A stretch of DNA of 64,000 nucleotides from Macrostomum lignano. Its lineage: Eukaryota. This document shows positions 8,020-63,075 of this stretch, in pieces. Position numbers and translations under genes: made by a program. Position 1 is the stretch's first letter. The number at the start of each line of letters is the position of its first letter. The stretch is taken from contig NIVC01001803.1 of NCBI GenBank assembly GCA_002269645.1, positions 121,941-185,940 on the forward strand. The letters run 5' to 3'. The notes beneath the pieces were generated by a model. It was not told the DNA's origin and made no database searches. It was given only the letters and a program-made list of their open reading frames with translations.

Positions 8020-8375
8020 GCTACAGGCTGCAGCCCAAGTGAGGCGGAATCTGGCACGGTCGAAAATCCCAAAAGATTGACTCTAACAGAGAGCTGCTTC
8101 GCTTCTCTGCCTTTGTGAGCCGAATCGAGCTGCATGAGACCCACTCTCTGGCAGATAGGCCGTCACAGCTGGATTAATTTTTGGCACTGGATAAAATTTA
8201 TTAACTGCATCCATTAAATAGCACGGAAGACCCTGCATGTAGAGAAGGCCGCTTCTCGATTAGAAGGATTTTTACGGCTTAAAAGCTGATAGGTGTAAAC
8301 AGTGCCAGTGCCATTCCTGAGCAGCCGACCTCTTTCATAGTCTGAGCATCGCCGCTCCTTGGGTTCTGAGCTGTT
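8020..8375. pseudogene. Second copy of the decayed segment at 1-345
   Basis: Shared collinear blocks listed for 1-345. Confidence 0.4.
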
Positions 8376-11300
8376 GTGAATTCCTGCTTGTTCCCGCAGA
8401 TCTCAATAAAGATTTGGCTTGAAAAGATCACTTTCTCTCTCTGAGCTGTTGTGAATTCCTGCTTGTTCCCGCAGATCTCAATAAAGATTTGGCTTGAAAA
8501 GATCACTTTCTCTCTCTGAGCTGTTGTGAATTCCTGCTTGTTCCCGCAGATCTCAATAAAGATTTGGCTTGAAAAGATCACTTTCTCTCTCTGAGCTGTT
8601 GTGAATTCCTGCTTGTTCCCGCAGATCTCAATAAAGATTTGGCTTGAAAAGATCACTTTCTCTCTCTGAGCTGTTGTGAATTCCTGCTTGTTCCCGCAGA
8701 TCTCAATAAAGATTTGGCTTGAAAAGATCACTTTCTCTCTCTGAGCTGTTGTGAATTCCTGCTTGTTCCCGCAGATCTCAATAAAGATTTGGCTTGAAAA
8801 GATCACTTTCTCTCTCTGAGCTGTTGTGAATTCCTGCTTGTTCCCGCAGATCTCAATAAAGATTTGGCTTGAAAAGATCACTTTCTCTCTCTGAGCTGTT
8901 GTGAATTCCTGCTTGTTCCCGCAGATCTCAATAAAGATTTGGCTTGAAAAGATCACTTTCTCTCTCTGAGCTGTTGTGAATTCCTGCTTGTTCCCGCAGA
9001 TCTCAATAAAGATTTGGCTTGAAAAGATCACTTTCTCTCTCTGAGCTGTTGTGAATTCCTGCTTGTTCCCGCAGATCTCAATAAAGATTTGGCTTGAAAA
9101 GATCACTTTCTCTCTCTGAGCTGTTGTGAATTCCTGCTTGTTCCCGCAGATCTCAATAAAGATTTGGCTTGAAAAGATCACTTTCTCTCTCTGAGCTGTT
9201 GTGAATTCCTGCTTGTTCCCGCAGATCTCAATAAAGATTTGGCTTGAAAAGATCACTTTCTCTCTCTGAGCTGTTGTGAATTCCTGCTTGTTCCCGCAGA
9301 TCTCAATAAAGATTTGGCTTGAAAAGATCACTTTCTCTCTCTGAGCTGTTGTGAATTCCTGCTTGTTCCCGCAGATCTCAATAAAGATTTGGCTTGAAAA
9401 GATCACTTTCTCTCTCTGAGCTGTTGTGAATTCCTGCTTGTTCCCGCAGATCTCAATAAAGATTTGGCTTGAAAAGATCACTTTCTCTCTCTGAGCTGTT
9501 GTGAATTCCTGCTTGTTCCCGCAGATCTCAATAAAGATTTGGCTTGAAAAGATCACTTTCTCTCTCTGAGCTGTTGTGAATTCCTGCTTGTTCCCGCAGA
9601 TCTCAATAAAGATTTGGCTTGAAAAGATCACTTTCTCTCTCTGAGCTGTTGTGAATTCCTGCTTGTTCCCGCAGATCTCAATAAAGATTTGGCTTGAAAA
9701 GATCACTTTCTCTCTCTGAGCTGTTGTGAATTCCTGCTTGTTCCCGCAGATCTCAATAAAGATTTGGCTTGAAAAGATCACTTTCTCTCTCTGAGCTGTT
9801 GTGAATTCCTGCTTGTTCCCGCAGATCTCAATAAAGATTTGGCTTGAAAAGATCACTTTCTCTCTCTGAGCTGTTGTGAATTCCTGCTTGTTCCCGCAGA
9901 TCTCAATAAAGATTTGGCTTGAAAAGATCACTTTCTCTCTCTGAGCTGTTGTGAATTCCTGCTTGTTCCCGCAGATCTCAATAAAGATTTGGCTTGAAAA
10001 GATCACTTTCTCTCTCTGAGCTGTTGTGAATTCCTGCTTGTTCCCGCAGATCTCAATAAAGATTTGGCTTGAAAAGATCACTTTCTCTCTCTGAGCTGTT
10101 GTGAATTCCTGCTTGTTCCCGCAGATCTCAATAAAGATTTGGCTTGAAAAGATCACTTTCTCTCTCTGAGCTGTTGTGAATTCCTGCTTGTTCCCGCAGA
10201 TCTCAATAAAGATTTGGCTTGAAAAGATCACTTTCTCTCTCTGAGCTGTTGTGAATTCCTGCTTGTTCCCGCAGATCTCAATAAAGATTTGGCTTGAAAA
10301 GATCACTTTCTCTCTCTGAGCTGTTGTGAATTCCTGCTTGTTCCCGCAGATCTCAATAAAGATTTGGCTTGAAAAGATCACTTTCTCTCTCTGAGCTGTT
10401 GTGAATTCCTGCTTGTTCCCGCAGATCTCAATAAAGATTTGGCTTGAAAAGATCACTTTCTCTCTCTGAGCTGTTGTGAATTCCTGCTTGTTCCCGCAGA
10501 TCTCAATAAAGATTTGGCTTGAAAAGATCACTTTCTCTCTCTGAGCTGTTGTGAATTCCTGCTTGTTCCCGCAGATCTCAATAAAGATTTGGCTTGAAAA
10601 GATCACTTTCTCTCTCTGAGCTGTTGTGAATTCCTGCTTGTTCCCGCAGATCTCAATAAAGATTTGGCTTGAAAAGATCACTTTCTCTCTCTGAGCTGTT
10701 GTGAATTCCTGCTTGTTCCCGCAGATCTCAATAAAGATTTGGCTTGAAAAGATCACTTTCTCTCTCTGAGCTGTTGTGAATTCCTGCTTGTTCCCGCAGA
10801 TCTCAATAAAGATTTGGCTTGAAAAGATCACTTTCTCTCTCTGAGCTGTTGTGAATTCCTGCTTGTTCCCGCAGATCTCAATAAAGATTTGGCTTGAAAA
10901 GATCACTTTCTCTCTCTGAGCTGTTGTGAATTCCTGCTTGTTCCCGCAGATCTCAATAAAGATTTGGCTTGAAAAGATCACTTTCTCTCTCTGAGCTGTT
11001 GTGAATTCCTGCTTGTTCCCGCAGATCTCAATAAAGATTTGGCTTGAAAAGATCACTTTCTCTCTCTGAGCTGTTGTGAATTCCTGCTTGTTCCCGCAGA
11101 TCTCAATAAAGATTTGGCTTGAAAAGATCACTTTCTCTCTCTGAGCTGTTGTGAATTCCTGCTTGTTCCCGCAGATCTCAATAAAGATTTGGCTTGAAAA
11201 GATCACTTTCTCTCTCTGAGCTGTTGTGAATTCCTGCTTGTTCCCGCAGATCTCAATAAAGATTTGGCTTGAAAAGATCACTTTCTCTCTCTGAGCTGTT

Positions 11301-14300
11301 GTGAATTCCTGCTTGTTCCCGCAGATCTCAATAAAGATTTGGCTTGAAAAGATCACTTTCTCTCTCTGAGCTGTTGTGAATTCCTGCTTGTTCCCGCAGA
11401 TCTCAATAAAGATTTGGCTTGAAAAGATCACTTTCTCTCTCTGAGCTGTTGTGAATTCCTGCTTGTTCCCGCAGATCTCAATAAAGATTTGGCTTGAAAA
11501 GATCACTTTCTCTCTCTGAGCTGTTGTGAATTCCTGCTTGTTCCCGCAGATCTCAATAAAGATTTGGCTTGAAAAGATCACTTTCTCTCTCTGAGCTGTT
11601 GTGAATTCCTGCTTGTTCCCGCAGATCTCAATAAAGATTTGGCTTGAAAAGATCACTTTCTCTCTCTGAGCTGTTGTGAATTCCTGCTTGTTCCCGCAGA
11701 TCTCAATAAAGATTTGGCTTGAAAAGATCACTTTCTCTCTCTGAGCTGTTGTGAATTCCTGCTTGTTCCCGCAGATCTCAATAAAGATTTGGCTTGAAAA
11801 GATCACTTTCTCTCTCTGAGCTGTTGTGAATTCCTGCTTGTTCCCGCAGATCTCAATAAAGATTTGGCTTGAAAAGATCACTTTCTCTCTCTGAGCTGTT
11901 GTGAATTCCTGCTTGTTCCCGCAGATCTCAATAAAGATTTGGCTTGAAAAGATCACTTTCTCTCTCTGAGCTGTTGTGAATTCCTGCTTGTTCCCGCAGA
12001 TCTCAATAAAGATTTGGCTTGAAAAGATCACTTTCTCTCTCTGAGCTGTTGTGAATTCCTGCTTGTTCCCGCAGATCTCAATAAAGATTTGGCTTGAAAA
12101 GATCACTTTCTCTCTCTGAGCTGTTGTGAATTCCTGCTTGTTCCCGCAGATCTCAATAAAGATTTGGCTTGAAAAGATCACTTTCTCTCTCTGAGCTGTT
12201 GTGAATTCCTGCTTGTTCCCGCAGATCTCAATAAAGATTTGGCTTGAAAAGATCACTTTCTCTCTCTGAGCTGTTGTGAATTCCTGCTTGTTCCCGCAGA
12301 TCTCAATAAAGATTTGGCTTGAAAAGATCACTTTCTCTCTCTGAGCTGTTGTGAATTCCTGCTTGTTCCCGCAGATCTCAATAAAGATTTGGCTTGAAAA
12401 GATCACTTTCTCTCTCTGAGCTGTTGTGAATTCCTGCTTGTTCCCGCAGATCTCAATAAAGATTTGGCTTGAAAAGATCACTTTCTCTCTCTGAGCTGTT
12501 GTGAATTCCTGCTTGTTCCCGCAGATCTCAATAAAGATTTGGCTTGAAAAGATCACTTTCTCTCTCTGAGCTGTTGTGAATTCCTGCTTGTTCCCGCAGA
12601 TCTCAATAAAGATTTGGCTTGAAAAGATCACTTTCTCTCTCTGAGCTGTTGTGAATTCCTGCTTGTTCCCGCAGATCTCAATAAAGATTTGGCTTGAAAA
12701 GATCACTTTCTCTCTCTGAGCTGTTGTGAATTCCTGCTTGTTCCCGCAGATCTCAATAAAGATTTGGCTTGAAAAGATCACTTTCTCTCTCTGAGCTGTT
12801 GTGAATTCCTGCTTGTTCCCGCAGATCTCAATAAAGATTTGGCTTGAAAAGATCACTTTCTCTCTCTGAGCTGTTGTGAATTCCTGCTTGTTCCCGCAGA
12901 TCTCAATAAAGATTTGGCTTGAAAAGATCACTTTCTCTCTCTGAGCTGTTGTGAATTCCTGCTTGTTCCCGCAGATCTCAATAAAGATTTGGCTTGAAAA
13001 GATCACTTTCTCTCTCTGAGCTGTTGTGAATTCCTGCTTGTTCCCGCAGATCTCAATAAAGATTTGGCTTGAAAAGATCACTTTCTCTCTCTGAGCTGTT
13101 GTGAATTCCTGCTTGTTCCCGCAGATCTCAATAAAGATTTGGCTTGAAAAGATCACTTTCTCTCTCTGAGCTGTTGTGAATTCCTGCTTGTTCCCGCAGA
13201 TCTCAATAAAGATTTGGCTTGAAAAGATCACTTTCTCTCTCTGAGCTGTTGTGAATTCCTGCTTGTTCCCGCAGATCTCAATAAAGATTTGGCTTGAAAA
13301 GATCACTTTCTCTCTCTGAGCTGTTGTGAATTCCTGCTTGTTCCCGCAGATCTCAATAAAGATTTGGCTTGAAAAGATCACTTTCTCTCTCTGAGCTGTT
13401 GTGAATTCCTGCTTGTTCCCGCAGATCTCAATAAAGATTTGGCTTGAAAAGATCACTTTCTCTCTCTGAGCTGTTGTGAATTCCTGCTTGTTCCCGCAGA
13501 TCTCAATAAAGATTTGGCTTGAAAAGATCACTTTCTCTCTCTGAGCTGTTGTGAATTCCTGCTTGTTCCCGCAGATCTCAATAAAGATTTGGCTTGAAAA
13601 GATCACTTTCTCTCTCTGAGCTGTTGTGAATTCCTGCTTGTTCCCGCAGATCTCAATAAAGATTTGGCTTGAAAAGATCACTTTCTCTCTCTGAGCTGTT
13701 GTGAATTCCTGCTTGTTCCCGCAGATCTCAATAAAGATTTGGCTTGAAAAGATCACTTTCTCTCTCTGAGCTGTTGTGAATTCCTGCTTGTTCCCGCAGA
13801 TCTCAATAAAGATTTGGCTTGAAAAGATCACTTTCTCTCTCTGAGCTGTTGTGAATTCCTGCTTGTTCCCGCAGATCTCAATAAAGATTTGGCTTGAAAA
13901 GATCACTTTCTCTCTCTGAGCTGTTGTGAATTCCTGCTTGTTCCCGCAGATCTCAATAAAGATTTGGCTTGAAAAGATCACTTTCTCTCTCTGAGCTGTT
14001 GTGAATTCCTGCTTGTTCCCGCAGATCTCAATAAAGATTTGGCTTGAAAAGATCACTTTCTCTCTCTGAGCTGTTGTGAATTCCTGCTTGTTCCCGCAGA
14101 TCTCAATAAAGATTAGGCTTGAAAAGATCACTTTCTCTCTCTGAGCTGTTGTGAATTCCTGCTTGTTCCCGCAGATCTCAATAAAGATTTGGCTTGAAAA
14201 GATCACTTTCTCTCTCTGAGCTGTTGTGAATTCCTGCTTGTTCCCGCAGATCTCAATAAAGATTAGGCTTGAAAAGATCACTTTCTCTCTCTGAGCTGTT

Positions 14301-14436
14301 GTGAATTCCTGCTTGTTCCCGCAGATCTCAATAAAGATTTGGCTTGAAAAGATCACTTTCTCTCTCTGAGCTGTTGTGAATTCCTGCTTGTTCCCGCAGA
14401 TCTCAATAAACATTTGGCTTGAAAAGATCACTTTCT
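8366..14436. repeat. 75-bp satellite, ~81 near-identical copies
   Basis: Unit ctgagctgttgtgaattcctgcttgttcccgcagatctcaataaagatttggcttgaaaagatcactttctctct. The only variants seen are at 14115, 14265 and 14411. Confidence 0.99.
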
Positions 14437-14919
14437 GTTTTACCAGTGTTCTAAACTCAGAAACATTAAGAATACTCGTATCAGGTTTCAAAGTGCTGAT
14501 TTGGATTTTGCTCACGTAACAGAGGACAAAAATTGGAGGAAAAGGCGACGACAGGTACATGTACTTTCGGTGAAGTTAACCATTCTAACCAACGAAAGAA
14601 ATAACAGTGCAGCATTGATCCATGAGAAAAAACTGCCGTTAGAGCAGGCCCAGCCCCCTCCCCAGGTCAGGAGGCGGTCAATCGAAATATTTTCTGCCAG
14701 GCTCAGCCCCTCAACTTCTGGTTAGTAGAAAGTAGCGCGTTCTTCTCTTCTCTTTTCTGGGTCAGTACGGAAAGTCAAGGCCGCTGTGCACCCAGTGTGA
14801 GTGTGTGCAGAGTGCGTGTCTGCGTACAGAATTGGCGCGCTTTTATGCGTTCAGGAGTCTGCGGAATGTGCAGAATTGCCTCAGCGCTGGTTGGGTGACA
14901 GGAAGTCGTCGAAGGCGTT

Positions 14920-25036: not shown

Positions 25037-39402
<14,366 letters not shown>

Positions 39403-41114
39403 TGACGACGAAGTTGGACCCGCTTCTTCGTCTGGCGCTGATGCAGACAGGAAGTAATGAGGTTGCATTGCACAAGTGTCCGAACAGTGTCCGGAGGTCC
39501 GGGTGTACATCTCACCCAACTCATGATATTTTGAGCAGTGTGTAGCAATTTGGGGACACAAACTTATCACATTTCATAGGAAATCTGAGCGCCAACAAAA
39601 CATATGCAGGCTGTGTGCAGAGTTAGGTGCCTTCTCAAGGAGACAAATTTCTTCCGAATGGGTTGAGAATTGAACCCCCTTAACCTTTCATTTCAGTCTG
39701 ACCACCTAACCACTAGGCTACAGCCTCTTACCACATACTATAGATGCTATGATGTTTTTTTTTCTAGACACCCAGAGACTGTCTACCAGAGTGTCTGCAG
39801 AAAAGCTTTTTGCTACCTTTTGTCTGCCTGTTTGCTGCCCTCCCCCTCATTTTCTGTCTGTTCTCTACCTTCTTGTTTGTAGCCACGGGTATCTCTCCTG
39901 AGGTCACAATGGTGGCCTGTTTTCCTTTTCATGAGCTAGTCATATGACAAGCCTTGTTTTCTTGTAGTCCTAAAGTGCAGTAAACATATTTGCTACACTT
40001 GCTGGTCTGTGTCGATAGGAAATCACATGCCCGGGAGCCCTTGCCAGAGGTGACTCATGTTTCTAAAAATAGACACTGAGTCACACAGCCCTGTGCACTT
40101 TGCCTGGGGACCCTGCATTCACTCTGGCAGGAAGTGACATCAGTTCTAAAAAAGAAAAAGTCAGAAGGTCTTGTGCACAAAGGTGCACTAGGGATTCTTG
40201 GGCTATAAATACAGACTCCCTTCACCCTTGGTTCAGTCAAGCCCTATTGGAATAAATGTTGAAAACTCGCAAACGCACGCTTTAGAAAAGAGTCAAACTA
40301 TTTTATTGAGCTTTAGGATTATTCAAGATGTTCCATTTTGTCGAAATCAAAATTTGCTAACTTTCCAAAATAGAAATTGAAATTTTCCTAAATAAAAGTT
40401 CAAAAAAAGTTTAGTTTAGTAAGTTTAGTATGACCAACATTCACTTTTTACCTTCAATTTACTGCTTATGCAAAATGAAATACATGTATATGTAGCAGAA
40501 ATTAGTTTATTTTAGCGACTTTTTAGACACTTCCAAAATTTTGACTTCTAAATTTTTTTTGAAATTGAAATTTGCTCTTAAAAAATTCAAATTTTGGAAA
40601 ATGAAATTGAAATTTTGGAACTTCTCTAAGCTTGATAAATTATGAGTGTATAGACCTCTAAGGGCCATGGCCGTGGCATGATGCAAATTCACATCAAATG
40701 CAAAAATAACACGGATACGCAAATTCTATCACCCCATTGCAAAAATTGAAGGCAATAGAGAATGCAAAAAAAAACAAAATGCTTCTTATAAGTTTTTCTA
40801 AAGAATTGTGTTGTGTAATAGGCCTTCATACAAATGGTTATTAAATAAATTTGACTATTGAATTCTTTATTTTTTTTTCTTTATTGTGCAGTACTTGAAT
40901 AAAAAAAGCTATCACCATGTTTTTTATTGTCTTAATCAAACATTTTATTTTGTTAAATGCGTAGATTTTTAAGATTTGGCTAATAATAAACACCATGAGA
41001 TAGATAGATGTGTTATCTATGCAACTATGGATTTGTAAAAGCTAGTACAGTTTGCTTGTACCTTTCTTTCATCTTGACACTTTCAGCCATTCAACAACTC
41101 AATCTTGCGCCTCC

Positions 41115-43530
41115 ATGAGCCTAAGTAATAGCCCGAGGTTACCAGTGGCTTGGAATGAAGACTGGCTAGAGCGCATTGATAACAATGGCAAAAAGATTGG
41201 CATCTGGGCAAAGAAGCTCAACAGCGAGAGTAGCACAGTGCGCTGCAACTGGTGTGCCAAAACTTTTGAAATAAAAAGTTGACTGACCAACTTTAGAAGC
41301 CACGCAGAGGCTGGCAAACATAAAAAGATTTTGTCCAGCAGAAAGAACTGCACTTCACTGCTGGTGGTGACTCAAACCCAAACTGATGTTGAAGGTGCTG
41401 CTGAAGCCAGCTCAGGCAATACATTTGCTTCAACTACATTAGACACAAGCAGTACAATTGCTGATACATGGGCAGCTGAAATTGGATATGTTACAAGACT
41501 TATAATCAAGGCACACAGCTTCGAATCAGAAGATCTCACTGAGAATATTGCTGCAATTTGTCGAGATTCAAAGATTCCTCCCCGTATGCAGCTCCATGAA
41601 AGCAAGATTGCTTATCTCCTTTAGGATGCATTGTTTCTATACATCAGAGAAGTAGTGCTGCAAGAGATCCGCACAGCTAAATGGTTCTCGCTCCAAATCA
41701 ATGAGGCTAATAAAGGATCCAAATACCTTGGAGTAGTTGCCCGCTTCCTGCCCAGCTTGTCTTTTGACGTTAAAGTGGTCTGCATTGACTTGTGTAAGTT
41801 AAAGTCTACAACAGCAGAGGCAATGGCGACTTCCATCCATCAGTCAATGTTGGAGTGTAGAATCAATAGCAACAACTGTCTCTCTATTATGAGTGACAGT
41901 TATAATGCTATGTGTGGTGTCAAGAGTGGTACAGTTGTTAGGCTAAAAACCAACGGGTTTCCTAACATAATCAATCTAGGAGGCTGTTCCTTACACCATA
42001 TCACTAACGTGGCTAGATATGCCTGTGGTTCTTCAGACCTTGGAATGTCAATAGAACACTTGCTTAAGGAGATCTACGCCTTCTTTAAGATAGTGCAATT
42101 GGATGGTTTTGATGACATTCTAGCTGACAGCTTCTGTGAGATAAAGAAGCTCGCATTCCTCAGACCTGTGGACACCTGGTGGCTCTAAGTGCTGCCTATC
42201 CTTGAACAAGTGCTCTATCTATATGCACCAATTGATAAGTTTTTTTTGGAACTGAACATCAAGAGTAGGGACTCAGGGCTGCACACTGGTACCATAAAAA
42301 GGCCCTAAGAGATCCAAAGACTGAGTTCTTTCTTTGCTTCTTAGTCAAGGTTTTGCAGCCACTTTAGCATTTTGAGCTTCTTTTCCAGCAGGAAAGCTCC
42401 TAGCTCCACATCCTACACATTCAAATGCTAGACTTGATAAAGTGCTAGCTGATGCAATTTGTAGATTTGGCCAAGCTTTCCAAGTGGCATCCATGGAAAG
42501 TCAACTTGGATGATCCAGCTGTCTGGCTAGGGCCCTATAGCATTAGGATGGGTGAGCCAGCAAAGGGATTGTTTGTTGACATGAGTGCTAACGACTAGCA
42601 AGTGTGTCTTTAAGCAATGAAAAAATTCTTCCAAGTTGGAACTGAAAAACTAAGGGACTACTTGCCCTTCAAGAGTAAGTTCGTCAAAGCCTGAAAATGC
42701 TGGATCTGAAGGAGCAGTGTAATTTATTGTATGTTAAGTGGGTTACAACCCTTGCGGCGGAAATGTAATTTGCTTTCACTGACATGGAGATTGGCAATGT
42801 GGAAGTTGAGGTATGTCTACACCAGATAGAGATTCTAGAGTTAGAGTTGTCAAATGTTATTGAGCTTTGGGAGTCTGTATCTAAGGCTAGTAATCATCCT
42901 CTATCAGATTTGTCAAAGCACTTCTTATTCTCCCACATGGGAATGCTGAATTTGAGTGAGTCTTGAGTCTGGTTTATGGTTTGGGACACAGTTACTAAGA
43001 AGCAAATGAGTTCGGCACCCTTCACTGTCAAGGCCTTAAGTTAATTGTCACTTGTTCCTGTTTGTCTATAAAGAAATAGACTGCTGCAAATCTGCCCGTC
43101 ACCTTAGCTCTCTGAACATGTGCGCAAGTGCTCATTTGGCATACTGACAGAGACTGAAGGATAAGGCAGCAGAAGCAAAGTGAGAGCGCTATAAAAAGCT
43201 AACGAAAGGGGTGCTCACTAAAGTGGAGGCAAAAAAGAAAGCTAGCAAGCAATTCAGCTCTTTGCAAATGGATGTTTCAAATGCAATGGAAATTAGGGAA
43301 AAAAAGAAGAGTGTTGCACTTCTGTTGCTTAAAGAAGCTTAGTAGAAAGCAGAGATGCACGAAAATGAGCTTGAAGAGCTTCGAAAGGCGAAGGATCATA
43401 TTTGGAAAAGGAATGAAGAAGAGTTAGAGCGAATTATGCAATTAGTTTTAAAGAGGAAGACTGCTGAGCTGGCAGCTATGACACCTTTGCTTGCATCTAT
43501 TGCCCAGAAAAAGTTTCAACGTGACTGACT
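41115..43530 (+). pseudogene. Decayed hAT transposase
   Basis: N-terminal zinc finger (W...W...C.WC...H). WFSLQINE (first catalytic D now N), SDS.NAM.G.K.G, CSLH (CxxH), TWWL (from TRWL), and PHGNAEFE (dimerisation domain) across a frameshift. Many stops. Confidence 0.88.
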
Positions 43531-43639
43531 TGACTAATCCTTTGCATTAATATAGACTGTAGTAGGCCCTAGTAGGTAGCAGGACTCATTGACAGTTGAC
43601 ACTCTACTTATTTAAGCTGTTTTTTTATGAGTGTAACAT

Positions 43640-43975
43640 ACACCGCACGTTATTACGCATGTTATTCCGCATGCTATTCCGCACGTCATTCCGCACGTTC
43701 CGCTAGTTATTCCGCATGTTCTGCATATTGTTCCGCACGGTATTCCGCACGTTATTCCGCACATTATTCCGCATGTTATTCCGTACGTTATTCCGCACGT
43801 TTTTCCGCACGTTATTCCGTACGTTATTCCGCACGTTATTCCGCACTATATTCCGTACGTTATTCCGCACGTTATTCCGCACGTTATTCCGCATGTTATT
43901 CCGGACGTTATTCCGCACATTATTCCGCACGTTATTCCGCTCCGCATGTTATTCCGTACGTTATTCCGCACATTA
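43640..43975 (+). repeat. Left foldback arm: 12-bp array (ttattccgcacg)
   Basis: Direct reading. Confidence 0.95.
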
Positions 43976-44108
43976 GTCCGCACATCTACTTTTTAAACAT
44001 ATTCCCCACCATTAATTAAGCTATTTCTAGTTTAACTTACATGTCCGATACATGATTTCCACGAAAAAACGTGAAGATATAGTTTTAATAAGTATAACGA
44101 TATGCATA

Positions 44109-44468
44109 GGGGGGGCGTAGCCCAGCGGTAGCGCAGCTGCTCTGGTGTGCCAGTGACCCAGGCTCGATTCCAAGTACAGTCACATTAGTTTGGGGCTGAA
44201 TTGGAATCTCGGCTTGGCTATGCTCGTGCAATTAACGGCCTTGAGAGCCAACCCTCCACGGCGCAGTGAAGTGTACATGCCTAACGATAATATAAAGTTA
44301 GGGCCGCTGTACACTCCTGTGTGATTGTGTGCCTGCGTACGTATCCGCGCGCTTGTATGCCTGCTCAGGGGAGTCGGCGGAATGGGCAGTAATGCCTCTC
44401 ACCGGTTGTGTGCCTATGTCGCTTAAAGTGCGCCAGGGTGCACACCCCCCTGCCTCTAATAAAAAAAT
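44109..44468 (+). mobile_element. tRNA-derived SINE
   Basis: Head with A box (GGCGTAGCCCAGCGGTAG) and B box (GGCTCGATTCC). Tail aataaaaaaa. 10-bp TSD GATATGCATA at 44099-44108 and 44469-44478. Confidence 0.8.
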
Positions 44469-45197
44469 GATATGCATAAAATGCGAAGGTAAAAATAATG
44501 CGTCATTAGCTAAATGCTTTTAGAGCATAATTAAAGCAGAATTACATGCATATTTAAAGATTTTCTTACTTTTGGTTCATTTTGTTATAACTTTTAGCAA
44601 CTACGCAGATTTTTGAAAAACGTTCTCTTATTGCTACCCGAACAATCACTACACGCGACCTGCTGCGGAACTTAGTAGTTCAAATGTACCTTACAATATA
44701 TGGTTATATGGCCTGGTCAAATAGGCATAGGCTCATTGAATTTTTTCTATTCATTCCAATTTTGAATTGGCTATAGGCAAAATGAAGCCGTTACCATGCC
44801 ACCTACTACTGACAAAATAAGTTTTTACCTGCAATTGTTTGATGTATAGGTTTTTCATTTTGAGATATCGTAGTGTCATGACAAAACAAAATTCTAATTG
44901 ACAAGACAATTGATGATTTTGGATCTTTGAACCAAACTTACATATATTCAGCTATTTGTATAATATAGTCTGCCAAGTAGTGAACATATGTATAAATTCA
45001 GATGCTATTGACTTTATGAGCATGCTATTCTAATTTTTAAAACTTCCTGAATTTTTTGTTATTGAATTATTTCATAATTTTACTATGCTTGTTAATAAAT
45101 TGGCTCATATATTATGCATTCATTTCAGCCATTCCAGCCATTTAGCCCTCTTCAAGCAACAATTTAATTCTGGTCAATCTTTTGATTTCCTCAAGAT

Positions 45198-45563
45198 ATG
45201 TTTGCACCAGGTGCATTTAATGACGAGTATTTGGACGTCTTATTGGCTGCCTTGCTTGCTGCTCGTGTTGAAAATGTGGTCTTTTTTGGCTTACACATGG
45301 TCCATGCTTTTCTTAAAGGAGGCATGGCATCTTTGATTGTGCTGTCTGACTGTCTTGATGACGCCGAAAATAAGATTCTTGAAGAAATGTGCAAGAGGTG
45401 TGATGTACCCCTTACTACGATTCCGGCTGATAAATTCAATTTATTAAATCCTCCTAATGATGTGACCAATGCAGCCGTCATCAATCAAAATTTACTATCG
45501 ATGTCTAATAGAGAAGTTTTGTGCAAGGCCATTCGTGAATTAAAACGGCACACAGCCAAGTAA
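45198..45563 (+). CDS. L7Ae/L30e/S12e/Gadd45-fold protein, 121 aa, intronless, inside the MULE
   Basis: AALLAAR..NVVFFGLHMVHAFLKGGMASLIVLSDCLD...ILEEMCKRCDVPL follows the family pattern (helix-G, basic/Gly loop, L-I-V-L strand, helix ending C...VP). By eye it aligns with L30e G.K..LK.L..GKAKLVILA.NC and S12e GIREAAKAL...AHLCVLASNCD. Confidence 0.7.
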   Translation: MFAPGAFNDEYLDVLLAALLAARVENVVFFGLHMVHAFLKGGMASLIVLSDCLDDAENKILEEMCKRCDVPLTTIPADKFNLLNPPNDVTNAAVINQNLLSMSNREVLCKAIRELKRHTAK

Positions 45564-46094
45564 GTCAAGTTACCTAGATTCTAAAAGCTTGCTACGAGGA
45601 AGGCAAGTGTTGTTACTTAAAAATAAATGGGAATCCCCGGCCGTCTCAGTGCCAATGAATCGGCATCCTGCAGCCTAAAAATCTTTATTCCATATGCTTG
45701 CCTTTTTTGAAAATCTTACCTCGAAATTATAACATTTCTATGCTACACCATCGTTCCACGTACTTATTAAAACCATTTTTACACGGGCCTTCCTTTTTTC
45801 TTGTGGCTATTATATATATAACTTACTGTAAATAACCTTGTTGTAACTCTACATGGAATTTGTGGGAATTTTTTTAAGTTACAATAGTATTAGATTTTTA
45901 AACGAATTTTACTAACGACACAAATAAGTTTTCATACATTCAAGCCAAAATAAGCCCTATTTAAATTATTTAAGGAATATACATGTACATTTCTTCCCGA
46001 AACTACCAGACCACGCGATAACGCAGCTGGCGCCTCTGCTTCCGGTTCAGCGGCTGCCTCCCATGCTTTTGATCGCAATGCAGCTCAGAATTTG

Positions 46095-49000
46095 ATGGAC
46101 TTTGCTACTACTCCTGGAACTACCAATCCCACGACTGAGTCTGGTGCCAATGAAACTGCTGCTCCCGAGTCTCAATCCGCGGCCTTTGAGACTACAAAGT
46201 TATTGGCCACAGAGGTTGGTGTGCGGATGTACGAGCGTAGCATTTTTTGCAACTAATTTTCATTTAAAATAAACGATTTCATTTGCTATTCTTAAGAAAA
46301 TCTTTTGTTTTTTAGTACAGTTATATTTTGCGACTCAATCTTGAAACTTTTGTAATATTATTTGGTTCTCTTTCGTCTCCCTATGTTAGGCTCGGTCGAT
46401 CAGCATCCCAGCAAACGTTTTCAAGCGGCACACTGAGGTGAAGGTGAAGGATGGAAAGGAGTGCATTGCCATGAAATCCTCATGGATAACGGAGGTTGTC
46501 CGACCGTTGCTTGCAGAAAGTGGTGAGCATTGCGCTGTGCATATCGACAAGCAGGTGCTGAGGCCCTACAAGAAAAGGAAAACTGCTGCTGCTTACTGGC
46601 TACGATTACGATGCGCTGAAGGGGGTGGCTGTCGCTGCAGTTTTATATTTGTATTCAACGAACTTCCGGTTAAAACTGATGCTGCACTTGCGTTTAGGAC
46701 CCAAGGAGAGCACGAAGGTCATGAAGCTTGTACCCCAAAGGAGAACATACGTCACCTGTGGCAACGCGGCTCATCCGAGGCCCGCGCCTTCGTTCAAGAA
46801 GAGGCAATGCAGCGCGGCGCTAGTGCAACTGAAATTTACGAGCAAAACGTAAGCAATTTTTTAAAAAAAGGTTGTTCTCTTTCTGCTGTGCGCCAGACTG
46901 TACACAGAGTGCGGTCGTCAGAAGATAAAGAGAACGACGAGATGAGAGATGTACTGAATCAGCGTCTTGATTGGCAAATCGCGATGCCGAGAAGCAAGCG
47001 CGGTGTGGCTGGATTCATCCAGCATGTCTCTGCGGCGCCCATATCTGTTACACTCTATCGCACCGAACAGATGGAACTTTTACAAAGTGTTTTAAGAAAG
47101 GATCCGATGACTCCTATCCACCTTGATGCTACGGGAGGCCTTATTCGGCAATCTGCGGTTGTTCCAGCCAATGTCCTGTTTTGCAGTGCGGTTATTTCCG
47201 ATAGGAAGGGAAGCAACATTGTTGCTGTACCACTCACGGAAGCCATCTTAGAGATCACGCAAACGGAAAACGTCGCTCATTGGATTGATAACTTCCTTCT
47301 TAATTTTGCCCGCTTCCGAGACCGTGGGATCTGGGAAGCTGGCAGCAAAGGACCGCAGCTATACGTTAGTGATTGTAGTTGGGTTTTTATTCACGCTATT
47401 CTTCGCTCCGCCGCTTCGATGAATATCGGAGGATACCTAAAGACTCAGTTCAAGCGCCTGATTGGTAAAGACCCAGGCTCCTCCCCTGTGCCTATGATAT
47501 TTTTATGTACGTCCCACTTCATTAAGAGAGTCGCTCTAACGATTAGCATCAAGAAGTCACATGTTCGACAAACTTTTCTGCTTGCCTTTGCACAAATTAT
47601 CCTAGCTCCAACGGTAAAATCCGCAGTTATTACATGGAAACTTATGCTTTGTGTTTTTGGATCGCGGACAAAAACCAGTCAGTTTAAGAGTGCTTACAGG
47701 GATTTGCGTAAACTTGTAAATAAGCTACCCGAGGAGTACCACGAGACAGTTAAGTCTCTGCCTTTGGATGAAGAACTGTCCGCTGCACAAACCAAGCTGG
47801 GATGCCCTAGTTTTCGTCCTGCCACTCAAACCCTTCGCAATGAGTCACCTTTTGCGGCACTTTTTGACTGCACCGAAATCTCTGAAGAGTTGGGTACTCC
47901 AAATGAACTCTTTCAGTTTAGTGCCCTAAGAAAAGTGCATGCCTTGTGGCTTCCACTTCTGCCTCTGTGGAGCACATGCGTTTTTCAAGGAACGACTAAA
48001 AGCAACCAGCATTTTACTAACGCCCCTGTAGAGACGTGGTTCAGATGGATAAAGTCGCAATTGCTTCGTCAGCCGGGAGCTCGACTAAAACTAAATCGTT
48101 TCGTGCGATGCCACTTTCAGTGCGTCAAGCAGCGTTTAGACCGAGTCACACATGAAATGAAGCAGCAACATCTACCCCCTAAAATGGCACGCAAAAGGCA
48201 CGCTTTGAACGATGAAACGTCTGCACACGGCCCTATGGGTGATGGTTGGACCAAGGCTTCAAAGCGGGCTCGACGAAGCTACTTAAAAGGAACGCAGCTT
48301 TCTCCTCTGCCCAGCAGCGACGACGAAGTCAGCGACGACGGCAGCAATATATGCATTCACGGGGACGATACAGACACTGACAAGCAGTACAGCGTCGGCA
48401 ATAACAGAAAAGAATATGGTGAGGAGGAATACAAGCAGGACAGTGACGACGATGGCAATGATGAAGATGTAGACGGTGATGAGGAGGAATACAAGCAGGA
48501 CAGTGACGACGATGGCAACGAGGAAGATGTAGACGTTGATGAGGCGGAAGACAAGCAGGACAGTGACGATGATGGCAATGAGGAAGATGTAGACATTGAT
48601 GAGGCGGAAATCAAGCAGGACAGTGACGATGATGGCAACAAGGAAGATGTAGACGGTGATGAGGCGGAAGACAAGCAGGACAGTGACGACGATGGCAACG
48701 AGGAAGATGTAGATGGTGATGAGGCGGAAGACAAGCAGGACAGTGACGACGATGGCAACGAGGAAGATGTAGACGGTGGCGAGACAGACCCATGCAAGTA
48801 TGACAGCAACAAAAGCGGCAATGAAGGGAGTGGCGACGGAAATGGTAACCAGGATGGTCGCTCCAATCAAGTAAAGAAATCACAGATAAAGAAGAAACCT
48901 AAAGAGCCAAAAATTTCGCGTTCGGCTTTAGTCCACTGTTTTACAACAGTAGGAAATCATGGATCATTCATTATTCGTCGTTTTGACCGGGATTCCTTGC

Positions 49001-51063
49001 TTAGGAAAGACTCGTGGATCAGCGCCAACGTAAGTTTACTTTAATTTTATCTGCTATATGTGCATCGATTTTTGCACTTTTTAATGCTCTCCGCTCTAAA
49101 GACGGTAATGTGTATGCAGCTTGGCGATAGTATGTTGAGTTCAACCGGTGAGTTTGTACTGGTTTTGTAGTGCGCAGAAAGTAAACTTTAAAATATTTGT
49201 CTTTTGCTAAGAGTTAGTAACATATTATACTCATAGATATAACTATATCGTATAGACCTTATGTGGGAACAAGACCAATTTATAAATAAAGGACACTACT
49301 AATACTGTGTCGGACAACACATCAGAATGCATGTCAAATAATTATTGCAATACACGTGTTTGTACAATAAAAAGGCATGTTAGGGATCGTTTCATTGGGC
49401 AGGGATGAAAATTTAACTATCGGCTTCTTATTTTTCAGTCCTCATATCAGAGTCAGCGCATGAATTTCGCTACTCATATTTTACAAGCGTTTACTTCATT
49501 AACCATTAGCGATCCCCTTGCGGAACCCAAAAATTTACAGGTTGTCAACGCTATTATTGCCGCCTTTGCCTCGGAGTGGGATGGATGTATTCCTCTTCTA
49601 AATTACGAAGTTGATCAGTTGCGGCAAGGCGAAGGTGCTATTACGGATGCACTTCTACGTAAGCTAGGCAAGGTAAGGTATTAAACTTGTTTAAGTACGT
49701 CGCACTCCGTACGTAAAGAATTTTAGTATGTCGACACTTGAATTTTAGCTTTTTTAGTTTAAAAATTTTTTAATACTAGAATTTTAGTTTTTACACCAAG
49801 AAAACGATAGGTACCATACACACCGCGTGAAAAAGTACATTCAGCAATTGAGTCACAGAAATCATATAAATTGCTCTTTGCTACACGCGTACCAAATAAA
49901 GGCGATTAGTTATATAACCCAACTTTTTGTCGCCATTGAAGGCTACCACCTCAATGATCGGATTGATTCATCAGAGCCATCACTTCATGCTACTTTACAT
50001 CAACATTTGCGATGGTTTCGTGTCGGTTCTGGATCTGCTGCAATGCTACGAGGACCTCAGCGTCTGCTTCTGCGCCAACCTAAAGTGAGCTGCAATGTTA
50101 TGTACCCATATTTCCCACATTACGCTCGTAATTTCTATAGCCACCAGCACCTTGCCTTTTCGTATTTTTTAAGCAAAATGTTTTAATGTCCTCAAAATTA
50201 ACTCTCCTGTCCAGTTCACTACGGCATGCTTTTCAATGGCGAAGAATGAAGCCTCTGCAGCTGCACCATTCGGTGCAGCAGGACGGCTCCAGCTGCGGCT
50301 TACTGGTTTCGCTTTTTGCGCAACGAATTGTCGCAAGACAATCTTTGCTTGTCTCCACAAGTTCGAAAGCTGTTTTGCAGTACCGCCTCGTCGTCTGGCG
50401 TAATCTACTAAATTTTGCACCAAATTCAGCCGAACTATGTTGGCATTGTGGCGAAGACCAGGTGGCCAAAAATGCCGCGAAATGAAAAAAGCTCGACAGA
50501 TGGGTAAGAAATGAAGTACTGAAATACTAAGTTAAGAAATCGGGCTTTAACCATAATTCATTTCTGATATTCTAACCGCATCACACTACTTCCTACGGAT
50601 ACCTATAGTAATGTTTCGGTTTTGATTTTTTGACAGCAAGTTATGGGAGTGGGGTGAAATAATTTTCTAGCAGGAGTTTTCAGCTTTTAAATCTATGGCA
50701 GCAGAACTAGCTACTACGGGAGGCTACGGGGGTGGAGCTGCAAAAATAGATGCGAAAGGCTAATGGTTAAGCTAAAAAAGCCAAATTTATATCAAAATTT
50801 GTCCTCCCAACTGACAGTAAGACAGGTCAAAGACGATTGACGGCCACAATTTGACCGCCCTTCTATTCAAGGTGAATGGGGTAGCGGTCAAATTTTGTCG
50901 GTTAATTTTTGGTTTCCCCCGTAAAACCAATTTGTATGTACCAAAGGAAAACGTGTTTTTTCAGATAGAGTGCGACGCATGCAATCGGTGGTTTCATCAG
51001 GCATGCGTCCGTGTTACTCAAGTTCCAAAGAATTGGTGCTGCGAATTTTGCCGCAAGGAGTAG
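46095..51063 (+). CDS. NOF-like MULE transposase - acidic repeat - Ulp1 (C48) protease - PHD finger; spliced, with one in-frame TGA at 50483-50485
   Basis: Exons (inferred) 46095-46214, 46390-49029, 49439-49672, 49942-50084, 50215-50503, 50965-51063, phases consistent. CxxxxxC..HxxH N-terminal finger; HLDATG (D), YVSDCS (D), LCTSH (CxxH), TNAPVETWF (E). HHFMLLY..VLD and QQDGSSCG form a C48-type triad. CWHC..W|IECDAC.RWFH.AC..W.CEFC is a PHD. The join across 49030-49438 is uncertain. Confidence 0.8.
48420..48780 (+). repeat. Coding 60-bp repeat (EAEDKQDSDDDGNEEDVDGD x6)
   Basis: Translation of ORF 46438..49044. Confidence 0.95.
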
Positions 51064-52117
51064 CTAGCCGCGTAACAACTGCAAGCATGCCTATATTTCT
51101 TTAAACTTACTTGAATTGTGTAATTATACAATTATGCCATTATCGTCAAATGTCATTCAGAAAGTCTAGAAAATTAAGACTTCTTAGAACAAAGAACTAA
51201 GAACAAAAGAAAAGTAAAAGGTATTGTAGCACGATATACGTACAGCTGTAAAATGTGAAAAAGCGTGCATTGAACGCAAAAGCGTGCTAAAATGGCTCGT
51301 GATTGCGTATTATTGCAAACTGTGTCATTCAATTAATGCATGAGAAATACCGGGTGGCGCATAAGTATACACCACGACATGGACTAAAGTTTAAATGGGG
51401 ATTACTACTACTCAATACTTGGTTTCCTAGCTTATGTTTGGTACTCAAAACCGCCAAAGTATTGAAAATAAATATCCATCCACCAAATCCTACATGTATA
51501 TCTAAAATGGTTTGTCGGTATTTATACTATCTATCTATAAATGCCGGTTCTCTCAATTCAACTTATTAACTGCTCTGTTTCTTTGATTTAAATTTGCTCA
51601 TTTGTGTATTTTGTTTTCATTTTTCGCCAGTTAATTAACCTATGTGGGTTTTTAAACATTAGTATGTTTTGTTCAAGTTTTTTAACCATTACATTAGTTT
51701 TTTTATTCACATGGTGTTAGGACTTATTAAAATTTATTAAAGCGTAAACTTCTTTCAGCATCAAAGACCACTTTATTTTGCGTCCTGTAGTGACCTTGTA
51801 CATGTATGATGTGATTCTTTCATTAATATATGTTGATAAGTAGTCACTCTTCTCTTCTTTTTCTCTAACCTCTCCGCGACCCCGCCTCTGTGCATGCAAC
51901 TCTGAACTCAACTTACAACTCTGCAACTACAGTTACTCTGTTGCAGTCAATTTATATAATTTTACGAATGGCATGTACTCGCAATCCAGGAAAATATAAC
52001 GACAAGCTAATGTACATGTAGGCTTTCGCTTTACATTTAAAATGTATAAAAAATTGAAAAATTACTTGTAAATTTTATACAGAACATCGTGGAAAAATGC
52101 TTATAGTAACATGCGAA

Positions 52118-52340
52118 ATAAAGTGCGGAATAACGTGCGGAATAACTTACGGAATAACGTGCGGAATAACTTGCGGAATAACATGCGGAATAACGTGCGG
52201 AATAACTTGCGGAATAACATGCGGAATAACGTGCGGAATAACTTACGGAATAACATGCGAAGTACCGTGCGGAATTACGTACGGAAAAACATGCGGAGTA
52301 CCGTGCGGAATAACGTATGGAATAACATGCGGCGTAAGTT
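52118..52340 (-). repeat. Right foldback arm: 12-bp array (cgtgcggaataa)
   Basis: Reverse complement of the left-arm unit. Confidence 0.95.
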
Positions 52341-55137
52341 ATTCACGTCTGTTTTTTACCTAAGCAGTTGAAAAGCTGCTTAATGAGTTAAAAATTAAAA
52401 TTAAAATTAAATTAAATCTCTACTCAAATTATTTTCAAAGTAAATAAGATTTTATTTACTTTGAAAATTCTGCCCATGATATGCCCCTTGGACTGTATAG
52501 TAAACATTTGTTCACTTATCTCTTATAAAAGTTGTTTTGTGACTAAAAAGACAGTAGACCTGAAGATGGCCCTAGCCTAGTTGGACCAAAACATGTCAAA
52601 AGAATAGCATTATAATATAATCTATGTTGATTTTCACTTTTATATTTCTTTGCCTTCTAAAGCATGCCACCTTACCTGAATAAAAGCACAATTTACGTGG
52701 TACCATGCGAATATTGAGTGCCCCAATTCTAATATTAAATAAATAGGCCCTAAAGATTTAGACACCCAACAAAACAAAAGGTAAAAGCAGAGCAGCAATT
52801 GCACATTAGACTAGATTTCATTATTCTAAGTAGCTATTGACCTACTGGTTTAAATAAAACGAAAATTAAATTCATCTTAGCCATATAAATATCATGTTAG
52901 GCCAGGCCAGCTAGGCCAGAGAACTTCATTTTTCATTCTAAGTAAAACTATCACAAAATGCTAGATTTAACTGAATTTTAATTAAAATGATGGCTCAGTA
53001 CTGGCATAAAGTTTGTCGGTTACTTGACACTTGTAAAAATTGCTTAACATAAATTATACAATTATTAGTCCAACTTTAAGTGTAATGTGTAACATGCAGC
53101 GCCCTGCCTCAATCTGTGTGTGTCTCTATTTTATAATAAGAATACTTTGAAGTTCATGGAAAAAAATTACTTTTTCAAATTTAAATATAAAACATAAAAA
53201 TGGTAAGCGTCTAAACAAAGCTACGTAGAGTTAAAAGCGGCTTTAAGCTAATCGCATGTTTTTGTGGTGATAGCAAAGTTTAAAAAAACATTTTTAACTT
53301 TTTATATGGCATTTAATATAAACAAATACATGAAATGAAAAGTTGTGACGCAGCGGTAGAAACCGGTAGATAGCATTTTTTGTTGTCAAGATATTAACGA
53401 AATGCTTGATTAGACCCTGTTAATCATCTCAACCACTCTTGTCTGGCGAGTTTGATATGTTATGATTTGTATGACTATACACATATTTTTATACGTTGGT
53501 TTTGTCTTTAATTCTTTTAAACTATTGTAGGCTGTTCGTGTTAGGCCTAGTTAGTTCTACTAGGGGCCTACGCCGCCTACTGTCAGTGTCAAGTGTCAAG
53601 GCCTCATTGACTAGGCCCTAGGGGCGATCAGGCAAACTAGGGCCTATACCGCTAATCAGAGACAGGCTCTAGATACGCATTTTAATACATATACACATAC
53701 AGCATAACAACAACTATATTATGCTGATTAGCATACATAGGCCTACTTATACCTACAGTATACTATATTACTATATCAAAACATGCTAATATGGGTAGGC
53801 CTACAACTATTACTATATACGCCTAACAAAACATAAAACAGCCTAATCGACCATAGATTAAAAAAACAATACCATGACCATGATTTTGAGATAGGCTACA
53901 CTAGGCCTATTAGTATTAGACTAAATTTGCATTTAATTAATTACAAATAAATAGGCCTAGCCTAGGCCATATGAAATTCTATTGGCTTAGCTATATCTAA
54001 AATTAGGCTATTATTAAGCTATTATTATCAAAATTTATATATTAGGCCTACTTTATAGTCACTTTCTTATGATATCTTATGGGAGCTTCTGCTGGGCATC
54101 ATGGGCGGCAAGAGCTTGCTTGTGGCACTAGGGGCATATCCTTATGCCCCCCTCTCCCAGAAAATGAGTCCACAGACCACATGTTAATTTTTAGTGCTTT
54201 TTCTGATTTTAGGCCCTTATTAGCAGCCTATAAAGGTACCTGTGCCCCCCTTGCCCTGTCTGTACCCAGTGCCCCTCCCCCTAAAATATTAGGCTCTGCT
54301 ACCTCTGCTAGGTAGGCCTATATCAATTGAAGGCTGAAGCTAATCTGGCAATGGTAATAGTATCTTACCTATGGTCTCATAGGTCCTAGTTGATTATAGA
54401 AGAAACAATGGCCAGGTTTTGGTTCAAGCCTACTTATTGAATCTATGTCTTTTTAAATTTGGTTTGGCATTAGCTACAATGTTTACTTCTACTAATCTCG
54501 CTTGGTCTCTAGGCTTTAGGCTTATATTTGTAAAGATTATTATCAAAACAAAGACAAAATGACTAGGCACTCTAAGTCTAATAATATTTTTACTTTTAGC
54601 TTTTATTCATATCTTTTGTTTCTGTGCTTTATTCACTTTGTACTCATTTGATACTTCTTTGTCAAATATATTAATATTAAAAGTTATTTTTTCTATTGTT
54701 CATTCTATGCTTACTCTCTTTTAGAATATTTAAATTTGTAAATGTTGTATTAATGGTATGCTAGCTCTTGTGCTAGAAAAGAAATAATCAGCCTTTGGGG
54801 CTACAACTTACTTATCTATATATTTGAGCATAGCTAAGCCATAGATATAAAATAAGCATTTGCATTTGCATTTGTTAAGAATACAATAGTAAATAGTTCT
54901 TTTTTATATTCTTTTTTAATTCACTAAGCTTTTTGCTCTTGAATTGCTGTTCAAGCCCCTATTAGATTAGTGGGCAAAGGTATCTGACTATCCATCATAA
55001 TTTTAATATTCTAGTGTCACAACTAGAGTCAAAGTAGATACTATTGCAATGAAGTAATACATTTTGGCCCTGAAAGTTTTAATCTAGTTCAAATGTACTT
55101 CCAACTAATGAATGCACTCCAACTAGCAAAAGCTAAA

Positions 55138-63003: not shown

Positions 63004-63075
63004 GGTTCGGTGGTGTAGTGGTTATCACATCTGTCTCACACACAGAAGGTCCCCGGTTCGAGCCCGGCCGAACCA
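63004..63075 (+). tRNA. trnV-CAC: tRNA-Val (CAC)
   Basis: Acceptor stem GGTTCGG/CCGAACC + A; D arm GTGTAGTGGTTATCAC; anticodon arm TCTGT-CTCACAC-ACAGA; GGTTCGAGC T loop; TTTTT terminator 4 nt downstream. The T-stem 3' strand is one G short. Confidence 0.92.

Follow-up and report, generated by a model that had tools for sequence, protein, structure and literature searches.

Analysis of a 64,000-nucleotide stretch of the Macrostomum lignano genome (assembly GCA_002269645.1, contig NIVC01001803.1, positions 121,941 to 185,940 of the forward strand), referred to here as the window, revealed an element of 8,723 bp at positions 43626-52348, lying between two perfect direct repeats of 9 bp (CTGTTTTTT). 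We conclude that it is very likely one copy, complete in its structure, of a Rehavkus-group DNA transposon (MuDR/MULE superfamily) that is of the autonomous type and has foldback-like arms. All of the features by which Rehavkus is recognised were found in it: homology of the DDE domain, a 9-bp target site duplication (TSD), terminal inverted repeats (TIRs) built of tandem repeats, a PHD finger and a minisatellite.

Relationship of the transposase to Rehavkus

The DDE domains of six Repbase Rehavkus elements, taken from the supplement of Dupeyron et al. 2019 (PMC6446971), served as references. Searched directly with phmmer (Z=1e6), the window protein matched three of the six end to end, with E values of 1e-8, 1.6e-8 and 1e-6. 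A hidden Markov model (HMM) of its 150 best relatives matched all six references end to end, with E values from 1e-88 to 6e-32, and gave E values of at least 0.055 with five canonical MULE domains; therefore, the protein falls in the Rehavkus clade. The [S/T]N..E..F...K motif and the CxxH spacing are common to the window protein and the Rehavkus rows of the published MULE alignment, and the same DDE/CxxH motifs are present in the MULE rows of that alignment (supplement of PMC6446971).

An exhaustive profile search covering 1.84 billion cluster representatives found 2,151 relatives of the transposase at E <= 1e-3, and 125 at E <= 1e-30. A word-indexed search returned two relatives, the closer of which was a Macrostomum lignano protein with 42% identity over 97% of the query; the word-indexed profile search with the family profile gave 8 matches, none of them a named protein. 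The Rehavkus-type family is thus large (2151 representative clusters at E <= 1e-3) and undetected by the Pfam models used here, so that its members are easily missed or misfiled.

The profile match to Rehavkus and the 9-bp TSD led us to set aside the candidates Zisupton/KDZ, hAT, P and Ginger. It is extremely improbable that the element belongs to one of these or another superfamily with cysteine-protease or PHD tails (Zisupton/KDZ, Ginger, P or hAT-like), with its Mutator-like features arising by convergence. Such an origin would agree with the lack of a Pfam MULE match, with the failure of the profile to detect canonical MULE domains and with the occurrence of Ulp1/OTU/PHD tails on Ginger1 transposases too (PMC2836005), but it is contradicted by the end-to-end profile match to six Rehavkus references, the 9-bp TSD, the [S/T]N..E..F...K motif with CxxH spacing as in the Rehavkus rows, and the merging of Rehavkus into MuDR by Repbase on sequence grounds, the similarity being weak but significant (PMC4455052).

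Target site duplication and terminal arms

The left copy of CTGTTTTTT is located at 43617-43625 and the right copy at 52349-52357; both were read directly, carry the same letters without assignment to a strand, and abut the outer ends of the arms exactly. When pairs of 50-nt windows were resampled from the 40-58 kb region, about 1.2% of the random pairs shared any 9-mer at any position.

The left end of the element begins with a unique tip of 17 nt (43626-43642, + strand, TATGAGTGTAACATACA) outside the array, followed by the left arm (43643-43983, 341 bp, + strand), which consists of about 27 tandem copies of the 12-bp unit CCGCACGTTATT; Tandem Repeats Finder (TRF) gave 28.5 copies with 80% matches. 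The right arm (52107-52332, 226 bp, - strand) carries about 19 inverted copies of the same unit (18.8 by TRF) and is followed by a unique tip of 16 nt outside the array (52333-52348, - strand, reverse complement ACGTGAATAACTTACG). With up to 3 mismatches allowed, the double 12-bp unit was found 31 times in the window, always within the two arms, against 0 occurrences expected. Unit-by-unit listing showed that positions 1-3 (CCG), 5 (A) and 8-12 (TTATT) of the 12-mer are almost invariant and positions 4, 6 and 7 variable, and the right arm has a partial higher-order pattern of 36 bp (CACG/CAAG/CATG). The first CpG of the unit (positions 2-3) is almost invariant in both arms; at the second (positions 6-7), the left arm often has TG or CA, to which the right arm adds AG. 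Judged from these letters, the 12-mer looks like a case of CpG decay at the second site and constraint at the first.

In the original prediction, a delimited and near-intact element of the foldback type, belonging to the Mutator superfamily, was described for this stretch, together with a 9-bp TSD and asymmetric arms of 12-bp subrepeats of about 330 and 220 bp; all of this is borne out by the data above. It had also described inverted ends, and this holds for one part of the termini: as found by an inverted-repeat finder, the arms pair over up to 218 nt with 84-88% complementarity, whereas the left tip matches the reverse complement of the right tip at just 10 of 16 positions. Therefore, the inverted symmetry is carried mainly by the arrays.

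Arms of short tandem subrepeats, unequal arm lengths and a 9-bp TSD are also classic features of the Drosophila foldback (FB) elements, and the element could be a direct relative of FB-NOF, its transposase being a NOF orthologue instead of, or besides, a Rehavkus member. We consider this rather unlikely. Foldback elements are mostly placed in the Mutator superfamily (PMC4079207), and one reference Rehavkus, from a Drosophila species, matches the family profile at 7e-50; on the other hand, the relationship that was tested with a positive result is that to Rehavkus. The title of Badal et al. 2013, a work cited in PMC4079207, presents FB-NOF as non-autonomous. The MULE-NOF literature consulted offered no mapping between NOF and Rehavkus. 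If NOF lies within the Rehavkus clade, kinship with FB-NOF and membership of Rehavkus amount to the same thing.

Between the left arm and the first open reading frame (ORF) of the element, the stretch 44110-44300 has by eye the look of the head of a tRNA-derived short interspersed element, with an A-box-like TAGCCCAGCGG and a B-box-like GGCTCGATTCC; a GC-rich segment comes after it and extends to about 44470. Neither ARAGORN, relaxed settings included, nor Rfam reported anything in 44110-44300, and no second copy of it was found in the window. A scan of the whole element with Rfam gave no match at E <= 0.1.

Structure of the transposase gene

Seven segments on the + strand, joined at GT-AG sites, give an uninterrupted in-frame reading frame of 1,309 codons, and they appear to be one multi-exon gene, predicted to encode a protein of roughly 1,190-1,310 amino acids. 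The putative coding exon 1 (45198-45559) is treated separately below. A putative exon 2 (46010-46214), proposed from its open frame and GT-AG sites, would encode a low-complexity linker and contains an alternative start ATG at 46095. The joins between exons 1 and 2 and between exons 2 and 3 were placed by splice-site consensus and frame only.

Exon 3 (46390-49029) encodes the body of the transposase: a Cys/His-rich N-terminal domain, the DDE core, an acidic repeat and the start of the Ulp1-like domain. Its frame is free of stops for 884 codons (46390-49041). The catalytic residues lie at 47125 (D), 47371 (D), 47506-47517 (CxxH) and 48031 (E), and they are invariant in alignments of 36-42 relatives; the DDE with CxxH was accordingly found intact, as had been predicted. 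The invariant motifs of the relatives are H.DATG and V.D.S (each with its D), C..H, and TN..VE.WF...K (with its E), and the window versions are HLDATGG, VSDCS, LCTSH and TNAPVETWFRWIK. After the DDE core comes a 60-bp minisatellite of 6 copies (48420-48778; 93% matches by TRF, seen also by self-BLAST), which is in frame and encodes an acidic repeat of 20 residues (EDKQDSDDDGNEEDVDGDEA). In our judgement, it corresponds to the minisatellite published as a feature of Rehavkus.

The N-terminal domain (46606-46725) has a C...CxC...HxxH pattern that is conserved among relatives. An AlphaFold2 model of the transposase, made with a 36-sequence alignment, had a mean predicted local distance difference test score (pLDDT) of 83. 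Comparison of the model with PDB by Foldseek found no match at E <= 0.001; the best-ranked meaningful matches, all weak, were DDE/RNase H-fold transposases (Mos1, IstA and Mu) and WRKY domains, the latter with probabilities of 0.75-0.87 and E values of about 0.5-1. On the model, the Cys/His-rich domain is probably a DNA-binding, WRKY-like domain, and the predicted fold fits a MULE-like layout without proving it.

The remaining exons encode the C-terminal part of the protein. Exon 4 (49439-49672) encodes the N-terminal part of the Ulp1-like domain; it has GT-AG sites, is in frame and aligns with relatives. Exon 5 (49942-50084) encodes the Ulp1-like catalytic His (HHFMLL, 49978-49995) and Asp (SVLDLL, 50023-50040). 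The oxyanion Gln and the catalytic Cys (QQDGSSCG, 50273-50299) are encoded by exon 6 (50215-50461), which also supplies the first CxxC of the PHD finger; exon 7 (50965-51063) holds the remainder of the finger and ends the frame with the stop codon.

The Ulp1-PHD module

The PHD finger was matched by Pfam PHD at E 1.4e-6, which confirms the PHD exon that had been predicted. Its Cys4-His-Cys3 ligand set is divided between two exons, with the first CxxC at the end of exon 6 and the other six ligands in exon 7, and is complete only once spliced; this is the strongest internal support for the gene model. Over its last 280 residues, the window model matches many relatives at their extreme C-termini. 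In an alignment of the module from 13 sequences, the catalytic His, Gln and Cys do not vary, nor do the eight PHD ligands, and every one of them occurs in the window; the Asp of the triad is present in the window too, and is Asp or Asn among relatives. A profile of the module matched SENP1, SENP2 and yeast Ulp1 with E values from 5e-24 (SENP1) to 2e-19, and PHD fingers at about 1e-10. The Pfam C48 threshold was passed individually by 10 of the 13 alignment members. The predicted protease exons are upheld in this sense: they align with relatives that pass C48 and keep the His, Gln, Cys and Asp, although the window copy alone is below the Pfam threshold.

Among 42 long relatives, Pfam found PHD in 13, Peptidase_C48 (Ulp1) in 9, YqaJ in 3, OTU in 1 and UCH in 1. 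Other accessory domains replace or join Ulp1 in some relatives (P0006, P0012 and three further members), the types being an OTU protease, a UCH-like domain and a YqaJ-type exonuclease (3 cases).

The protease and PHD exons had been regarded as cargo carried by the element. On the predicted gene model, Ulp1-PHD is a C-terminal module of the transposase itself and not cargo, because its exons belong to the transposase gene, with the PHD finger split over exons 6 and 7, and because many related transposases finish with this module as well. Ginger1 and Mutator transposases were aligned in their Ulp1 and PHD domains by Bao, Kapitonov and Jurka in 2010, with Ulp1-carrying Mutator elements listed for hydra, lancelet and plants (PMC2836005). 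The order of DDE, coding minisatellite, Ulp1 and PHD is kept across distant members, which argues that the deSUMOylase-like and chromatin-reader domains are functional parts and not passengers.

The upstream L7Ae-like ORF

An ORF of 121 codons (45198-45560, + strand), which is either the putative coding exon 1 of the transposase gene or a separate small gene, shows a weak likeness to L7Ae/eS12/Gadd45. Its Pfam L7Ae (PF01248) match is borderline (E 3.3e-5, 23.9 bits against a cut-off of 22.1), and among PDB entries ribosomal protein eS12 matched it best, at E 0.05. The end of the ORF coincides exactly with a GTAAGT donor at 45560, which gives an in-frame join to the acceptor at 46009/46010. No counterpart of the ORF was found in 165 family proteins or in the related loci, and a homologue search returned none, nor any host parent gene. 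The single-sequence AlphaFold2 model had a pLDDT of 41 and was unusable. The ORF may be a first exon peculiar to this lineage, a fragment captured from a host or a product of chance. Of the extra gene that had been claimed for the element, the ORF itself is real, yet it may belong to the transposase gene as its first coding exon instead of forming a gene of its own.

It is quite possible, if short of probable, that the ORF is true cargo, that is, a host fragment captured in the manner of Pack-MULEs, lying outside the transposase transcript and probably non-functional. The absence of counterparts in the family and the borderline Pfam match agree with this, as does a related Macrostomum element in which the left array lies just 85 bp from the gene; capture of host fragments is known for MULEs (PMC8277862). 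Against it, the ORF is on the same strand as the transposase, is intact throughout its 121 codons and has its end exactly where a consensus GTAAGT donor lies; a splice from this donor to an acceptor 85 nt ahead of the next ATG keeps the frame, and the search for a host parent gene came up empty. That the ORF encodes a genuine, spliced N-terminal domain of the transposase, as a lineage-specific accessory module, we regard as distinctly unlikely, although its splice sites keep the frame and the ORF is intact. If true, such an L7Ae/eS12/Gadd45-like module would be unreported for any Mutator-type element, and could represent an RNA-binding or Gadd45-like factor, perhaps aiding the escape of the element from silencing.

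Related elements in Macrostomum lignano

Two copies of a related element of about 12.9 kb are located at different loci of GCA_002269645.1 (L004, 5686-18593; L005, 6318-18583) and are 97.8% identical over about 10.8 kb. Each has a transposase gene between inverted arrays of an 11-bp unit, measuring 2.86 kb and 1.0 kb (274 and 97 copies). The tips of these copies match over at least 55 nt and start with ACGTATGAAAC, and the right tip of the window element (ACGTGAATAAC...) is similar to the related tip ACGTATGAAACATTCG. One copy has GTACACTGT on both sides as a 9-bp TSD, and the other an 8-9-bp repeat in an AT run. The presence of two near-identical copies with kilobase arrays suggests recent activity.

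At the locus of the closest homologue (42% identity), the DDE exon is followed by an in-frame minisatellite of 30 bp x 33 and three Ulp1-like exons, and a 2.2-kb array of a 20-bp unit is found further on. The locus of a distant relative (L003) has a 186-bp tandem repeat after the gene, and no clear TIRs were found within reach of it. Relatives share the layout; thus, the array-built unequal arms and the coding minisatellite after the DDE core are traits of the group, and each lineage has its own repeat unit.

A foldback element of 650 bp, made of 14-bp units (TTGCCCGCCGAGAT), was seen in the closest homologue at L001 8983-9629, with a Ulp1-like exon on either side. It probably arose by the nested insertion of a non-autonomous element into an intron.

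Integrity and mobility of the element

Several observations weigh against the assignment as a complete, autonomous-type Rehavkus-group transposon of the Mutator superfamily. The identity to the reference Rehavkus DDE domains is low (22-24%), and no Pfam transposase family was matched by the window protein or by 42 relatives. With canonical MULE domains undetected by the family HMM, the placement in the Mutator superfamily rests on published work, namely the Repbase merger (PMC4455052) and the citation of Yuan and Wessler for Rehavkus in that superfamily in a passage of PMC6446971. At the termini, the tips agree imperfectly, and the left tip is without the ACG that starts both the right tip and the tips of the related Macrostomum elements; lacking these first three bases, the left end may be damaged. 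Neither a second copy nor an empty site was found within the window by searches with the 12-mer pair and by self-search of the whole element, and an exact 24-mer scan of metagenome contigs found no copy of the element. As a single copy is known, its mobility in this genome rests on inference. Finally, the Ulp1-like region of the window is below the Pfam threshold when taken alone, and exon 4 is longer than in relatives and has uncertain boundaries; the protease could be degenerate or exon 4 mis-modelled.

Some of these points would also suit an immobilised or domesticated host gene derived from a transposase and keeping its old arms: the single copy in 64 kb, the imperfect tips (10/16) with a left end possibly short of 3 bp, and an intact frame of about 1,300 codons, which suggests selection or youth. 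Domestication is nevertheless highly unlikely. The 9-bp TSD is perfect, both inverted arrays are retained and all catalytic residues are kept, whereas TIRs are normally lost from domesticated genes; moreover, the element lies about 90 bp downstream of the open frame at 43346-43525, beside a stretch that resembles a transposase by eye only.

Proposed mechanism of transposition

The mechanism proposed here starts from three observations, namely the intact catalytic residues, the paired inverted arrays and the 9-bp duplication, and from the related copies, which have evidently moved. By analogy with other DDE cut-and-paste transposons, the N-terminal Cys/His domain of the transposase would bind many 12-bp units in each arm and pair the ends. 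DDE chemistry would then excise the element and reinsert it at a 9-bp staggered cut, the repair of which would give rise to the CTGTTTTTT duplication. The Ulp1-PHD tail may act on chromatin or SUMO-dependent processes near transposition, silencing or repair, a speculative role suggested by Bao et al. (PMC2836005). More terminal tandem repeats lead to more transposase binding and excision according to Liu and Wessler (2017), as cited in a passage of the Tribolium paper, and such an effect of repeat number would explain why arrays are kept and expanding. Binding to the 12-mer, the ability of the element to move today, what Ulp1 and PHD do, and the splicing of exon 1 belong to the inferred part of this picture.

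Neighbouring features

Upstream of the element, three consecutive open segments at 41046-42185 (+ strand) look by eye like a zinc finger and a hAT-like transposase (C..H in GGCSLHHI), and they had no significant Pfam match. A charged, helix-like frame of 60 codons at 43346-43525 (+ strand), ending with a stop about 90 bp upstream of the element, had no Pfam match either. Should this frame be the final exon of some host gene, the element would lie directly downstream of that gene. A near-perfect palindrome of 38 nt (95%) is found at 52431-52468, about 75 bp downstream of the right TSD.

Further away, an uninterrupted ORF of 2,093 codons at 8279-14560 (- strand) has many repeated Pfam DUF6342 matches (E 7.6e-56) and would be an unusually long single exon in this setting. 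An ORF at 6114-7082 (- strand) has QRICH1 and DUF3504 domains (E about 7e-10), a pairing that is often tied to Crypton-derived genes. The region 32001-38000 has a strong positive GC skew, from 0.20 to 0.50 in 2-kb windows, and long overlapping ORFs on both strands, which suggests a G-rich repetitive tract. A tRNA-Val (CAC) gene is located at 63004-63075 (+ strand).

Comparison with known systems

The element was compared with the plant Ulp1 MULEs (KI-MULEs and VANDAL-type), with which it has in common that a Mutator-superfamily element carries a Ulp1-like protease. In the plant elements, however, the Ulp1-like protein usually has an ORF of its own, the transposase is of the canonical MuDR type and the arms are not 12-mer arrays. 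The accessory function of VANDAL is possibly tied to escape from silencing. The features shared with Drosophila FB and FB-NOF, given above, lie in the short tandem subrepeats of the arms, their unequal lengths and the 9-bp TSD. The arms of FB are kilobases long and have units of 10, 20 and 31 bp, from which the window arms (341 and 226 bp, 12-bp unit) differ. A further likeness is the large internal coding segment, which a minority of FB copies have.

Tm1 of root-knot nematodes has TIRs composed of a motif of about 14 bp in varying number, a 9-bp TSD and a Mutator-type transposase (PMC3169594). It resembles the window element in its composite FB-like arms, its 9-bp TSD, the short asymmetric terminal motifs outside the inverted repeat and the Mutator-type transposase, but its transposase is Phantom-like, of another MULE clade, and Ulp1 and PHD are unreported for it (PMC3169594). 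Animal MuDR-type and Ginger1 elements (PMC2836005) also have Ulp1 C48 and then PHD at the transposase C-terminus, and few introns; the core of Ginger1 is, in contrast, a retroviral-type integrase. The original prediction had taken the full combination of features to be undescribed. This could not be maintained: the transposase belongs to the Rehavkus group, a tail of Ulp1 and PHD was already on record for animal Mutator transposases in 2010 (PMC2836005), and the combination is already described piecewise in the literature.

Rehavkus itself is the closest system. It is described as having a 9-bp TSD, TIRs of 26-400 bp, one ORF, a PHD finger and a minisatellite (table 1 of PMC6446971), with element sizes of 4.9-18.5 kb (table S1 of PMC6446971); the published TIR range extends to 412 bp. 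The TSD of 9 bp, the PHD finger and long TIRs that contain tandem repeats are given for it in bioRxiv 10.1101/2024.12.02.626372 as well. The DDE domains of Rehavkus-1_HR from Helobdella robusta and of Rehavkus-1_TC and -3_TC from Tribolium castaneum are homologous to that of the window end to end. Shared features are the 9-bp TSD, the long tandem-repeat inverted termini, the PHD finger, the C-terminal/3′ minisatellite and the large size (9-18 kb in Rehavkus); differences are the low identity of the DDE core and a subrepeat that is very short in the window (12 bp) and makes up nearly the whole arm. In the published summaries of Rehavkus consulted, the Ulp1 domain and an L7Ae-like ORF are unmentioned. 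The nearest relative of the window protein is from a flatworm, whereas the 2019 survey had arthropods and annelids only (PMC6446971), and the range of the Rehavkus group is hereby extended to flatworms. Nothing here changes what is known in kind, and the element joins a known group, of which it is a clean specimen: for a poorly documented kind of transposon, it offers the two ends, the TSD and a gene that is open throughout and has all the domains, and is useful for annotation.

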